Below the pieces are notes generated by a model, which worked only from the letters and a program-made list of their open reading frames with translations, was not told where the DNA came from and made no database searches. This document shows positions 24,101 through 30,100 of a DNA stretch of 64,000 nucleotides, piece by piece. The stretch is from Bugula neritina. Taxonomy: Eukaryota > Animalia > Bryozoa. How positions within the stretch are numbered: position 1 is the stretch's first letter; the number at the start of each line of letters is the position of its first letter. The stretch lies in NCBI GenBank assembly GCA_964035545.1, contig OZ037765.1, positions 25,233,504-25,297,503 of the forward strand, read 5' to 3'. The position numbers and the translations under genes are program-made.

Positions 24101-27100
24101 TTACGTATGCACACTAGTTGAAGGAAATTATAACTGCTAGAAAGGAAGAACATGACTTAGGGCAATGAACTAAAGGCCGGGTTTTTTACTATGACAATTG
24201 ATCTCTAAATTGCAGCGGATGACTACAAGGAGAGTTTAGAGAAGACTCACTAGACATCTGTGTATTGTAGAGAGCTCTGTAACTGGTGGGGCCAGCTCCC
24301 GCACTAGTGTATGCTACTACTTGTATCAAATATTTATGGCCTGGTTTTAGATCCTCAATAATTATTGATGTTTCGGACGTATTCTCAGCCCTCAAGTCTA
24401 TGGAGTCTGACTCGTCCTGGATTCTTACTTGGTACATGGTAATTACACCATTTCTTAAAGCGGGATCCAATTCACGCCAAGATACAACAGCTGATGTGTC
24501 GGTGTGATATGTGGCTGTGATATTCTGAGGCGAACCTGACGGTACTGTGTGTGCCAAAGTGCAGAACAGGAATTAACAATAGACAAACAATAAGAAATGT
24601 GGTGGCAGCAGTTACTGGCAGCAGTGCTGACCAAGTTAGTGGACAGAGAAATTACAGCACAATATTGAAACAGATAGGTGTAATAAATAATATTTTTATA
24701 ATGTGGTTGTATTGCAAAAGTTGCCAAGTGGTGAAGCCCAATTTCAAATGTCAAAGGATATCTTTTTCATGTGAGAAAGAAACAGCCAAGTACAGCTTAA
24801 GCATTATCCAGTAGAACTAGAATGATGAAATAGGCAATGGTTGGCAAACATCAGCTTACAAATCCGCGGCAATTTTACAATTTTAATAGAATTTAGATTA
24901 AGACAATAAAAAATTAGTTTGTGCACATACAATATTGATGCTATGTGACTAAAATTGCACAACTATGAGGGCCTATACCTTTGATGAATGCTAATCAAAA
25001 TAGAATACGGAAAAGTTATTTATTACATTAAACCACAGGCGAAGCAAAGTTGAAGTATAGAGAATCATGCAGTAGTTAGTAATGAGTATATAATGACAAC
25101 ATTATAGGTTAGCAAGATGTACCACTCTGGTTACAAGTTCTAGCGGCCCACCCGATCAAAATCAAACTCGGTTTTTAGATCAAAAAACTTATTTAGACTA
25201 GTTACCTCCATCTTCTGTTCTGATGTGAGCAACAGCAGCTTCCCCATAATTCTTTTCATTTCGAGCTTGGAGTTGGAATTCATATTCAGTGCCTTTCACT
25301 GTTAAAATTTAAAAGATGAAATATTTTAAATAAAAGCTTGAAAAAAAAAACAATTAAACTTTTCTTTGTGTCTGATAAAGCTATTTCCATTTTTTGGAAG
25401 AAATTAGATATATACTGAAAAGATTGCTAATCAAAGTAGACATCTTACTGATTTTCACAGCAATGTAGGAATTTCTTGTACTGTTTATAGCAATGGTGCT
25501 GGTAAGAACGTCTTCATGCCGCTTGCCCCACATTAGCCTGTAGCTTGTAAGCTGGCCATGTGTTTCCATGGGGGGTTCCCATGTCACCCGAATACGAGGT
25601 GGTTCCTGGTCAACTATCTCCAGATTTAGATTTAAAGGAGCTGTTGGCACTACAAGTTTTGAACACGAAAATATCATTAAAATGTCAGTGATGGTTAACT
25701 TTATGCAGCAACATAAAAGTTCATGATACTTATACATTACATTTCAGTTCAGGAAGTAAGCTTTAATATCAAAACTTTGATTTCCAAAGCTATCAAAACA
25801 CACTAGCATGTTTTTGCAAGCATCAGTTATATATATAAAAACATGAAATAACTGGAATTTAAGCTTCGCTATCAGTATAGTGATGACGAAGGTCAATTAT
25901 TTTCAAGTCAACATTAAATTCACAAAGTGAGTGAAAATGCGAAACTGAAACAAATAGCACATTTCTTTGAAAGTTTAATGAAGAAAAATGTAAAAATGTT
26001 GGCCCTCTCACAAACATATCTCAAGCAAAACTGGAATAAAGGATAATTTTCAGGTGACAACATTTGCCATATTAGCAAGTGCTACCAAAACAAATAATAA
26101 ACTAGCTCTACAACCGTCACACGAGAAGAATAATTATTATAAAAGTGGTGATGAAAATGAACACATTTTTTGCAGTAGCATTTTTGTTGAAAGTTTACCA
26201 CTCGAGTCACCTTGCAAACCACTTGGGACACTGACTGGAACCTCTGTTTTCAACGCTCCGGTCTCAGCCACACGAGGAGTAACAGAATTAGGAGTATTAG
26301 CAATTTGAGAGTGCGAGCCAACAAGGGCTATATTAGTTGATAGTGGCTTGGAGCTTGAAATTGTGGGCTGAACAGTTGTGGCTGCAGGAAATAGAGCTGC
26401 TGTTAACTTATTATCTTGTTTTGTAGTTTTAGATTTTGTTGTAAGGTTGAAAGAGTCATTTCTATTGGTTTTCGAGGTTGTAGTTGGCTGAATAGAAGTA
26501 TTAGCTTTAGTGGCTAGTTGGGTAGAAGTAGTAGTCGTGGTAGTTGACTTTCCAGTAGTCAATGTGTTAGCTAGTTTAGTACTGCTGGTGTTTTGGTTAG
26601 TGCTTATAATAGTTTTAGTAACAGTAGTAATTGGTTTGGGAGTAGCAGTTGTTTCAGTTTCAGTAGTAGTAGTAGTTGGTTTAGTGGTAGTAGTAGTAGT
26701 AGTAGTAGTAGTAGGTTTAGTGGTAGTAGTAGTTGGTTTAGTGGTAGTAGTAGTAGTTGGTTTAGTGGTAGTAGTAGTAGTAGGTTTAGTGGTAGTAGTA
26801 GTAGGTTTAGTGGTAGTAGTAGTTGGTTTAGTGGTAGTAGTAGTAGTTGGTTTAGTGGTAGTAGTAGTTGGTTTGGTGGTAGTAGTAGTATTTGGTTTAA
26901 TGGTAGCAGTAGTAGTTGATTTAGTGGTAGTAGTAGTAGTTGGTTTAGTGGTAGTAGTAGTTGGTTTAGTGGTAGTAGTGGTAGTTGGTTTAGTGGTAGT
27001 GGTAGTTGGTTTAGTGGTAGTAGTGGTAGTTGGTTTAGTGGTAGTAGTGGTAGTTGGTTTAGTGGTAGTATTGGATTGCATAAAGGTGGAAGAGTTGACC

Positions 27101-30100
27101 AAATATTCATCCTTTGTTGCGGGTGTAGTGACAGCAGTTGAAGAAGACAGAAGCCATTTGCTTTTTGGTGATGCACCTTGCACCTTTTCAGTAACGAAGG
27201 AAAGTTTACTTGTTATAGTTGTAATAGATGATGGCAATGTTGTGGTGGACTGTGTTGTGAATGAAGGAGGGACTGATGTAAGTACAGGTGAAATAGGCTC
27301 ATACTGACAATGGCAGTAAATTTTTTTATATGTGGCTAAAGGTGGGGGCGGTGGTGGAGGAAGAGGGGTGGGTAATGTAAAACCACTATATTTTTCAGCA
27401 CCTTTTACAGGAAAATAACTGGGAATCGATGGTTTGGTGAAAACAGGCTGAGGCTGGGCAGTTGAAAAGGCAGATTGGTCAGTCACCATTGTTGTGGTTA
27501 TAGTTGTAGGGCCTACAGTTGTCGCTGTAGCAAAAACACACTAGTTTGAAACATTGTGTAAGGGGAAATCTGTATTCTGTAAACATGTTATGTCACATTA
27601 TACATGGAGATACGCCATTGTAACATACAAGACTAAAAACATGTTGGTGTTTGGTAACCTACCTGCTCCAGATGTAACTATAGTTCTGGCTACACTAGCA
27701 GCTCCATCTCCAGCCACAGTGAATGCTATAATTTGAAAGACGTACTTGGTGCTGTAGTTGAGACCGCTGATGGTATGGTTGACTGCGCTGCCATTTAGGA
27801 GCTGCATAGTAATAATTAAACTAATAGAAATGCTAACCAGTTACAGTATTGATTATTAGCAACAAAATGACTGCAATTATGACTAAAAGAGGTAATGAAA
27901 TTCCATGTCAAGCGTTATGCAGTGACTCAACCCCTGCCTCAGGGGCATTGGCCCAAGCAAACAACTATGCATTATTACAAGCCACACAAAGAATAAAACA
28001 TGAAGAAAACTTTCCAGTTACAATCATACATTTATGATCTTGGTTTCCCCGATTCTCAATCCATCTGTTCCAACTTTGGACTGATAGATCTGATAGCCTC
28101 TGATTTCTCCCCGAGCCTCTCGATCAGTCAGCTTTTTCCATTGCAGCAACACAGCGGTAGAGTTGATAACGTGTACGTAGAAATTCTTCGGGGCATCAGG
28201 AACTGTAGAAATATTTGAAAAAGAATTACAGGTGTGTGTATATATACACATCTAGTTGATTAGGCTACATAACATGAAGTGCTTTGGAAAATTGAAAACA
28301 ACGAGAAAAATCAAAAGCAACAATTTGTGCATAATGGAAAAAATATTTAAAATAATATTGAGGTAGGCTACATTTAGGTGGTTACAACAGTAATTGGCAG
28401 CATTTCCACTGACTGGCTGACAGAGAAGGGCTTTTAGCAATATATTGTATATGAACAAAGATAGTGATAAATAAATCACAGTTATTAGTTGTGATCTACC
28501 TGTAGATGAACTTTTGGCTAAAGTTAGAAACCGCCAAGTATAGTACAAGCAATGGAGAAAGCAATGCATATACACGACTAACGAAAGATTCAATATTTTT
28601 GTTTGGGATATGGGCATATAATACTTTCAATATTAGCCATGGCCAGATTTGTAGGCTGGCCTCTAGGACTACCCATAGACAAAACTCACCACTCTCTCCA
28701 GTTCTGGCTACTATAGGCTGAGATGGTGGACTATCACCAATACTGGTGCTGGCCTTCATCCAAATCCTATATTTAGTCCACACCTCAAGACTATCAATAA
28801 CAAAGCTTGTTTGAGCAGTGTCTGTTATTTGCTCAATAGAAGCAGTGCTATCATCTCGATTTATATCTTTTATATAGTATATTTTATAGCCCGTAATTTC
28901 CCCATTAGCCTGGATTGACGGTGGTGGTTCCCAATCTACTTTCAATTGAAAAGCAGCATCAGGGTAGGGAGGTTCAGCTTGTATATTGAGTGGCGGTGCA
29001 GAAGGTTCTTCAAAGAAACAATGTGATCATAATACACGCAACATGCAAAGCAGAAACAAAAAACACGTAAGCAACCAAAGTTGTACGAACTTATTACAAT
29101 TTTACAACATTGAAAACAACTTAGCAATATTTTGCTTATCAATTCAGCGTTAAAAAGTAAAATGTCGGAAGGCTTGAAAATAAATAGAGGCTTATAAAGG
29201 GTCAAAAACGAAAACCAAGATAACTTTTTGCTTGAGAAAAAGGTAAGTATAAATCAACAAGGCATTGCTGTAAGTAAGGCTTGTAAGTGCATGACATATT
29301 AGATGAGTGACAAATGCAAATTGTGTACCAGAGTTTTACAACATTCAATCAAGCTTCATTTTCCTTGTGCAAAAGAAACATTTAGCAAGCTGGCCGAGAC
29401 TCAAGTCAAACAACCATCAACAAATAGTTAACAATGGATCAGGCTGAGAATAATTCTAGCAGGATATGGGGGTATATGTGGTATAAATATACAATACAAG
29501 AAGATTGCTCGCAATGAGTGAAATGGGCATATAAAGCAGACACTTGCAGGCTGATCAACAACATTTCAGAACATACTTCGTCTTGTGCGAATAGAATGTC
29601 TTGTTGTAGGCAGTACTACAGAATGTGTGGTAAAGCAGAAGAATATATATGTGGAATATTTAGGTATACATATAATACGTGCTATAGGTGTGCAGGCTGA
29701 CTTCTACAAACTCATTTGTTGGTAAGAAATAATAATCAAGGTTCACACAGGTTCGGTTGTCAGGTTTAAATAGTACAGCAACAAAGACCTCTTACAGAAA
29801 CAGCTGACAGGCAACATGGAATGAATTTTATGCTGAAAAGTTCCACAAGTTTTCGTTTCAAAATAGCCATTAGCAATTGTATTAAAAATTGTTATAATTT
29901 GACCAGTCACTCAATGTAGACTATGTTGGTGTGTTTAAAGGAATAAATAAAATCCTTAAATCATGCCAGGTTAGCTACAGCCAAAATGCAACTGTGTACA
30001 GAGTAAACATATGTCCTTGTGAACGTAGAAGCTGCACTCACTATTGTGAAAAAATCAAATTAAAATCATAAAAAAGTGAAATTTTAGATCTAAATCTTTA

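Follow-up and report, generated by a model that had tools for sequence, protein, structure and literature searches.

A candidate mucin-like exon between two FN3 domains of the LAR-type receptor phosphatase of the bryozoan Bugula neritina

Phosphatases of the LAR family have a conserved role in organising axon guidance and the formation of synapses, and a locus in the bryozoan Bugula neritina raises the question of whether one of them carries a long mucin-like segment in the middle of its ectodomain. We analysed 64,000 nucleotides of animal DNA with a guanine-cytosine (GC) content of about 33% (hereafter the window), which lie on contig/chromosome 1 of the B. neritina assembly. The window contains a LAR-type receptor tyrosine phosphatase gene on its minus strand, and the intron between the exons of the fifth and sixth FN3 domains (FN5 and FN6) harbours a threonine-rich open frame, most of which appears as a separate open reading frame (ORF) of 450 residues (26137-27489). 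From the sequence, we consider it probable, at roughly 0.65, that the stretch from 27524 to 26211 on the minus strand is a real, lineage-specific, mucin-like internal coding exon of the LAR gene. Coding statistics, in-phase splice sites in the order of an exon, exon-like GC content, and flanks that are single copy in the genome favour this reading. Genome-wide searches covered the B. neritina assembly of 216,009,554 bases, and the chromosome-level assembly of the species is described as 216.00 Mb (PMC11480708).

The open frame comprises 467 codons (26140-27540, minus) inside the FN5/FN6 intron. The parts of the locus on which the argument depends are the following.

27663-27801, minus: second-half exon of FN5 (FN5b), recognised from its sequence, the splice model, and a match to positions 44-80 of the Pfam fn3 model, with a phase-1 donor after 27663.
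27525-27662, minus: intron between FN5b and the proposed exon, 138 nucleotides, GC 34.8%, with its AG at 27526-27525.
26211-27524, minus: proposed mucin-like exon, rich in Pro, Thr and Ser (PTS), 1314 nucleotides, 438 codons, phase 1 at entry and exit, with sites scored by position weight matrix (PWM).
27070-27524, minus: non-repeat N-terminal flank, 151 codons, with a PPPPPPP run and a CHC pair, GC 42.6%.
26663-27070, minus: tandem array found by Tandem Repeats Finder (TRF), 18 units of 21 or 24 nucleotides encoding K-P-T(5-6).
26212-26662, minus: non-repeat C-terminal flank, 150 codons to the donor, rich in Thr, Ser, Lys and Asn, with several N-x-S/T sequons, GC 40.2%.
26137-26210, minus: read-through tail, 24 more codons and a TAA stop (26139-26137), translated only if the donor is left unused.
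25650-26210, minus: intron from the proposed donor to the first-half exon of FN6 (FN6a), with an intron-like GC content of 30.8%, sense ATTAAA at 25979 and 25767, and no AATAAA.
25449-25649, minus: FN6a (VPTAPLNL...), with a phase-1 acceptor, a donor (TCA/gtaaga) after 25449, and a Pfam fn3 match (E 2.3e-6); the second-half coding stretch of FN6 lies downstream of 25449.

The junctions of this stretch are compatible with those of the LAR gene at both ends. FN5b terminates in ACATCTGGAGCAG/gtaggt at 27663, in phase 1 (GCAG/gtaggt), and the acceptor tgtgtttttgctacag/CGACAACT places the exon start at 27524, from which the frame continues through G/CG (Ala) into TTVGPTT...MVTDQ and is identical to that of the 450-residue ORF. 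An earlier note on this DNA had proposed that the seemingly separate ORF is in frame with the FN5 exon by way of a clean acceptor, and our reconstruction upholds this. Two phase-1 GT dinucleotides could end the exon, one at 26211 (CAAG/gtgact; 1314 nucleotides, 438 codons) and the other at 26199 (AGTG/gtaaac; 1326 nucleotides, 442 codons), and the FN6a acceptor, ttgtag/TGCCAACAGCTCC, begins its exon at 25649, also in phase 1. Whether either donor is used or the exon is skipped, the junction reads G/TG (Val) followed by PTAPLNL, the skipped form being SGA-V-PTAP, such that inclusion and skipping are both compatible with the frame; the symmetric (phase 1-1) arrangement toward FN6 that the note had described is therefore borne out at the level of the sequence. 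The insertion point lies exactly between FN3 domains, with positions 44-80 of the Pfam fn3 model matched before it and positions 3-58 after it.

Site strength was assessed with PWMs built from 24 donors and 26 acceptors curated in the LAR gene. The acceptor at 27524 scores 8.0, at the 77th percentile of the 26 real acceptors, a value of 8 being reached by only 2.3% of the AGs in the gene, and it is the first AG scoring above 4 downstream of the FN5 donor; the open frame itself begins only 6 codons upstream of this site. The donor at 26211 scores 6.5, higher than any other of the 46 GTs in the frame, and falls at the 38th percentile of the 24 real donors, while that at 26199 scores 3.0 (4th percentile). 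Because 26211 outscores 26199, we prefer the exon of 438 codons to the one of 442 residues put forward previously, for which an in-phase donor exists but is the weaker site. Introns of 114-243 nucleotides occur elsewhere in the same gene, and, because the acceptor is the first good one and lies only 138 nucleotides past the FN5 donor, our guess is that a sizeable fraction of transcripts, if not more, would include the exon.

The same upstream junction bears on a nested gene, that is, an independent transcription unit on the same strand within the LAR intron, encoding a small Thr-rich protein from the ATG at 27489 or having upstream exons of its own. This ATG, 12 codons into the frame, does give the ORF of 450 residues, and many separate mucin-like genes exist in the B. 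neritina genome. However, the N-terminus that follows the first Met reads as non-hydrophobic, with no signal peptide, and a nested mucin-type product could therefore not enter the secretory pathway; the 138 nucleotides up to the FN5b exon leave no room for a promoter and a leader exon; and the opening of the frame coincides with a strong acceptor whose phase is the one that LAR needs. We consider a nested gene highly improbable.

At the downstream end, the donor at 26211 sits 24 codons ahead of the stop, which raises the matter of an alternative last exon, in which FN5 would be spliced to 27524, the internal donors ignored, translation stopped at 26137, and the transcript cleaved nearby, giving a secreted Ig1-3/FN1-5/mucin protein devoid of phosphatase domains. 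The closure of the frame so soon after the donor is in keeping with this, as is an ATTAAA at 25979, 158 nucleotides past the stop. A precedent for such a decoy comes from rat LAR, in which a retained intron of the extracellular region introduces stops in frame, so that a secreted LAR is predicted (PMC2120354); the abstract of that report does not describe the intron as a long open mucin-like frame, and gives no basis for comparing where it lies or what it contains. On the other side, a phase-correct donor stands just ahead of the stop, and no sense-strand AATAAA occurs between 32990 and 25019, a span in which the only ATTAAA hexamers of this intron are those at 25979 and 25767. Moreover, across the LAR gene body (window 16000-52000), AATAAA is found 32 times in sense and 83 times in antisense orientation, A and T being nearly balanced, while ATTAAA has no strand bias (37 versus 36). 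Such a depletion of AATAAA would be expected if premature poly(A) signals were selected against, and suggests that these signals matter here and are avoided. Thus, of the secreted decoy that the earlier note had anticipated, the stop at 26137 stands and the polyadenylation signal is at best a variant one; a truncated secreted isoform is possible but not favoured, and as the explanation of the stretch as a whole we rate it distinctly unlikely.

The frame is open beyond what chance would give, and its sequence statistics are of the coding type. The repeat core is by itself uninformative, since two frames of the sense strand and one of the opposite strand are open across it, and the weight rests on the non-repeat flanks. 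The N-terminal flank of 151 codons was stop-free in 23 of 20000 composition-matched shuffles, and the 174-codon stretch that joins the C-terminal flank to the tail past the donor (26140-26661) in only one of 20000, while the other frames of the flanks contain 3 to 28 stops. Since ACN-rich frames resist stops, we also simulated a pure KPT array that decays by substitution, with no indels, to the present Thr-codon content of the flanks; even under this friendliest of null models, the probability of having no stop was 0.018 and 0.015 for the two flanks, or jointly about 3e-4. Codons one step from a stop make up 28% of the N-terminal and 23% of the C-terminal flank, as compared to 31% in bona fide LAR exons, and deviations from the modal codons of the repeat fall at position 3 in 26 cases versus 3 at positions 1-2. 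With respect to base composition, LAR exons have a GC content of 46.4 +/- 2.2% and introns 31-32%, and only 0.5% of intronic 450-nucleotide windows reach the 39% or more seen in both flanks (42.6% and 40.2%). The GC content falls at both proposed boundaries, to 30.8% directly after the donor at 26211 and to 34.8% in the upstream intron. Genome searches found both flanks to be single copy, with no paralogue, and we accordingly rejected an origin as a transposon, a recent duplicate, or a fresh copy of a mucin gene.

These data have to be set against the alternative that the stretch is unspliced or untranscribed intronic sequence, namely, a minisatellite in the Thr frame whose edges are old and decayed and that is open because ACN and CCN codons lie far from stops and that never enters mature LAR mRNA. 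Several observations are in its favour: similar arrays are common in the genome, one of them forms an open, in-frame intron in another protein tyrosine phosphatase gene (see below), the repeat core is open in more than one frame, and no homologue of the unique flank was found in the searches of other organisms. Yet the flanks are not composed of ACN alone, their share of codons one step from a stop is like that of real exons, the decayed-array model remains at odds with the open frame, the GC content is exon-like and steps at the proposed boundaries, the order is that of acceptor, open frame and donor in the right phase, and control arrays are without such flanks. On this balance, we judge the intronic explanation unlikely.

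The controls require some elaboration. At least 118 stretches of Thr-coding (ACT/ACC) minisatellite, with 70-82% similarity to the LAR array, occur across all chromosomes, for example, C3:31888771-31890577, C8:615131-617934 and C8:2000088-2002888, and one on contig 3 (L004) has a PTTTTTT open frame of 647 residues. The two C8 loci, at 0.615 and 2.000 Mb, gave identical score series, which suggests a large duplication. Among 20 further Thr-rich array loci taken as a control set, the Thr frame mostly ends 0-30 codons from the array or slips into poly-Leu or poly-Tyr, where the ACT repeat is translated in a shifted frame and has a non-coding look; in a few loci a coding flank is present on one side. 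At none of the 20 do the open non-repeat codons exceed 150 on both sides, as compared to 153 and 159 at the LAR locus. The most instructive control, L020 (G000:C1:4113500-4117000; contig 1, about 4.115 Mb), has a 159-codon (ACT)n array at approximately 1377-2162 in locus coordinates, plus strand, that is open and in frame between the motifs CSVYWPD and FHFTQWPDHGVP of another phosphatase gene. It is bounded by AAG/GTGAGT and TTCAG/GT, and is a minisatellite-filled intron that is in frame by chance. Since L020 is intronic and yet open, an open frame alone could mislead in calling Thr-rich exons in this genome; the order of sites differs, however, being donor, array, acceptor at L020 and acceptor, frame, donor at LAR. 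Separately, we observed Thr arrays that run in frame into evidently coding flanks at L019 (G000:C2:1964100-1967700), L017 (G000:C8:8696600-8700200) and L022 (G000:C3:12857700-12861600), these flanks comprising a lysyl-oxidase-like motif (CADVYRSDIDCQWIDITD), an FN3-like stretch and a Cys-rich module, such that mucin-like segments fused to folded extracellular domains recur in the genome.

The encoded segment is predicted to be of the mucin type, located at the FN5/FN6 inter-domain boundary. Between acceptor and stop, the 461 open-frame codons specify 168 Thr, 49 Pro and 46 Ser, together 57% of residues (36% Thr, 11% Pro and 10% Ser). The sequence and TRF results confirmed the proline run, the CHC pair and the (KPTTTTT)n repeat that had been reported in the earlier note; the first two are in the unique head, where the pair forms part of a YCHCQY motif (two Cys). 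TRF reported periods of 24 x 18.2, 45 x 8.1 and 69 x 5.5 for the array at 26663-27070, and the units are 7 KPTTTTTT, 7 KPTTTTT and 3 variants. No Pfam family matched the mucin-like exon, which has the features of a PTS region, namely, more than 40% Pro, Thr and Ser, tandem repeats, few hydrophobic or Cys residues, and no known fold. In a language-model feature space the nearest clusters were those of respiratory syncytial virus glycoprotein G (0.80), which is a weak lead and compositional only.

If spliced between the FN5 and FN6 exons, the stretch would add 438 residues at the linker between two folded FN3 domains: a unique head rich in Pro, Ser and Thr, in which the poly-Pro run and the two Cys lie, then the 18 tandem K-P-T(5-6) units, and last a tail, likewise unique, rich in Thr, Ser and Asn. 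Crossing the secretory pathway as part of the ectodomain, this segment would probably become densely O-glycosylated and act as an extended, stiff spacer that holds the ligand-binding half of the receptor (Ig1-3/FN1-5) far from the half nearer the membrane (FN6-9). Mucin-type segments extend about 0.2 nm per residue, and by our estimate the insert could add several tens of nm to the 12-domain chain. The flexible geometry of the Ig/FN3 string is thought to set which ligands a LAR receptor meets in cis or in trans.

A number of points weigh against the exon. Thr-frame (ACN) arrays are abundant in this genome, as given above, and can sit in introns, open and in frame by chance. The donor at 26211 is only mid-range in strength, and the splice model rests on 24-26 sites from one gene. 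A spacer of probably tens of nm, as estimated above, fits poorly with the trans-synaptic roles of the LAR family. Finally, no homologue of the unique N-terminal flank was found in other organisms among 1.84 billion cluster representatives, nor did a word-indexed protein search with this flank recover one, leaving the reading with no cross-species conservation to draw on. Two hits among the 1.84 billion representatives were set aside as chance matches to unrelated repeat proteins. A metagenome scan returned the exact word YKKIYCHCQ in a bacterial contig (L030, Ga0268262_10001641; 4968-5282), where a short ORF containing it runs antisense to a gene resembling a glycosyltransferase, and we regard it as a chance match and not a relative. 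An exact look-up of the 450-residue ORF among the protein records of other organisms returned nothing, and a search with the FN6a exon for transcript fragments that reach across the upstream junction yielded no candidate; these negatives concern other organisms and carry no information on B. neritina transcripts.

The identity of the host gene is clear from its sequence. Reading the translation, the gene extends from about 51.8 kb to 16.1 kb of the window on the minus strand and contains three Ig-like exons, nine FN3 domains (five of which were checked with Pfam fn3), an RGKR furin-type site, a transmembrane segment, and the phosphatase domains D1 and D2. Drosophila Lar likewise has nine FN3 domains. 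Besides the exon of the third Ig domain (Ig3), the Ig-like exons are these.

51595-51810, minus: Ig-like exon.
50905-51135, minus: Ig-like exon.

Compared to solved structures, the D1 exon best matched those of LAR/PTPRF, 1LAR (1lar_A) and 6KR4 (6kr4_A), at E 3e-102 and in two stretches each, with PTPRA, PTPRE and CD45 ranking behind. D1 was also recovered by Pfam Y_phosphatase (E 1.4e-38), the D2 exons were seen in the translation, and the Ig3 exon matched Ig3 of PTPRS/PTPRD (E 2e-34); the exons flanking the mucin-like stretch hold Pfam fn3 and Y_phosphatase domains. A whole-genome search with the exon of FN7 returned the LAR locus as its sole match, pointing to a single R2A gene in the species, and no second LAR gene was found when one was sought in the B. 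neritina genome. On this basis, the host is the only receptor tyrosine phosphatase gene of the LAR type (R2A) in the Bugula neritina genome. Two further observations concern the gene and its surroundings. The membrane-proximal exon with RGKR (21462-21665, minus) supplies the furin-type processing site expected of LAR-family ectodomains, and downstream of the gene is a long (CA/TG)n-type microsatellite (window 6221-6521) whose open frames read CMCMCM/HVHVHV.

LAR/PTPRF, PTPRS, PTPRD and Drosophila Lar resemble the host in having an ectodomain of Ig and FN3 modules, a furin-type site, a transmembrane segment, and tandem D1/D2 domains. Published descriptions give R2A phosphatases three Ig domains and between five and nine FN3 domains, with alternative splicing introducing changes (PMC10815196), in agreement with the earlier statement that LAR-family ectodomains consist of Ig and FN3 only. 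The FN4-FN8 region is a hot spot of alternative splicing in vertebrates (PMC2120354, PMC2133008), with variants that comprise FN3 deletions and mini-exons of a few residues (PMC2120354). Described R2A members therefore have Ig/FN3 modules with mini-exons or FN3 deletions, whereas the Bugula gene has a predicted Thr-rich spacer of 438 residues, and our literature search turned up no LAR orthologue reported to carry an insert of mucin-like or Thr-rich character.

Outside the R2A group, exons of CD45 (PTPRC) encode an O-glycosylated segment that changes ectodomain length and glycan load (PMC10815196). The comparison to CD45 made in the earlier note holds insofar as both are receptor phosphatases with a mucin-type region, predicted in the Bugula case, but the likeness is only general and amounts to analogy: the CD45 segment is N-terminal, belongs to a different subgroup of receptor phosphatases, has no sequence relationship to the present one, and is demonstrably alternatively spliced, whereas the Bugula segment would lie mid-ectodomain, between FN5 and FN6, and is a predicted one. 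A nearer architectural parallel than CD45 is the PAT domain of neurofascin-186, a Pro/Ala/Thr-rich, mucin-like segment placed beside FN3 domains in some isoforms (PMC8716720). Both are Ig/FN3 cell-surface proteins, although neurofascin belongs to a different gene family, has no sequence similarity to the Bugula protein, and has had its segment demonstrated at the RNA and protein levels. The muscle-specific domain of NCAM and the large, alternatively spliced spacer of PTPRZ/phosphacan are further close parallels.

A regulated cassette can be envisaged, in which the receptor would alternate between the canonical form, with three Ig and nine FN3 domains, and one in which FN5 and FN6 are set apart by the 438-residue O-glycosylated spacer. 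A type IIa phosphatase would then have independently acquired a switch of size and glycan load like that of CD45 or neurofascin-186, built by the capture or in-place expansion of the Thr-coding minisatellites in which this genome is unusually rich, and the length of the insert could vary between individuals. We offer this proposal tentatively and hold it to be rather doubtful; were it true, we estimate that the spacer would about triple the reach of the ectodomain.

The meaning of the locus depends on whether the exon is spliced in. If it is not, the stretch would be merely an unusually well-kept open frame within an intron. If it is, a mucin spacer in the middle of the ectodomain would be a new architecture for the LAR family and would constitute a natural experiment on ectodomain length and glycan load in an adhesion-coupled phosphatase, the notion that underlies the size-based segregation of CD45. 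It would also indicate that, where a genome has plentiful Thr-coding minisatellites, a deeply conserved receptor can be reshaped by way of a phase 1-1 exon.

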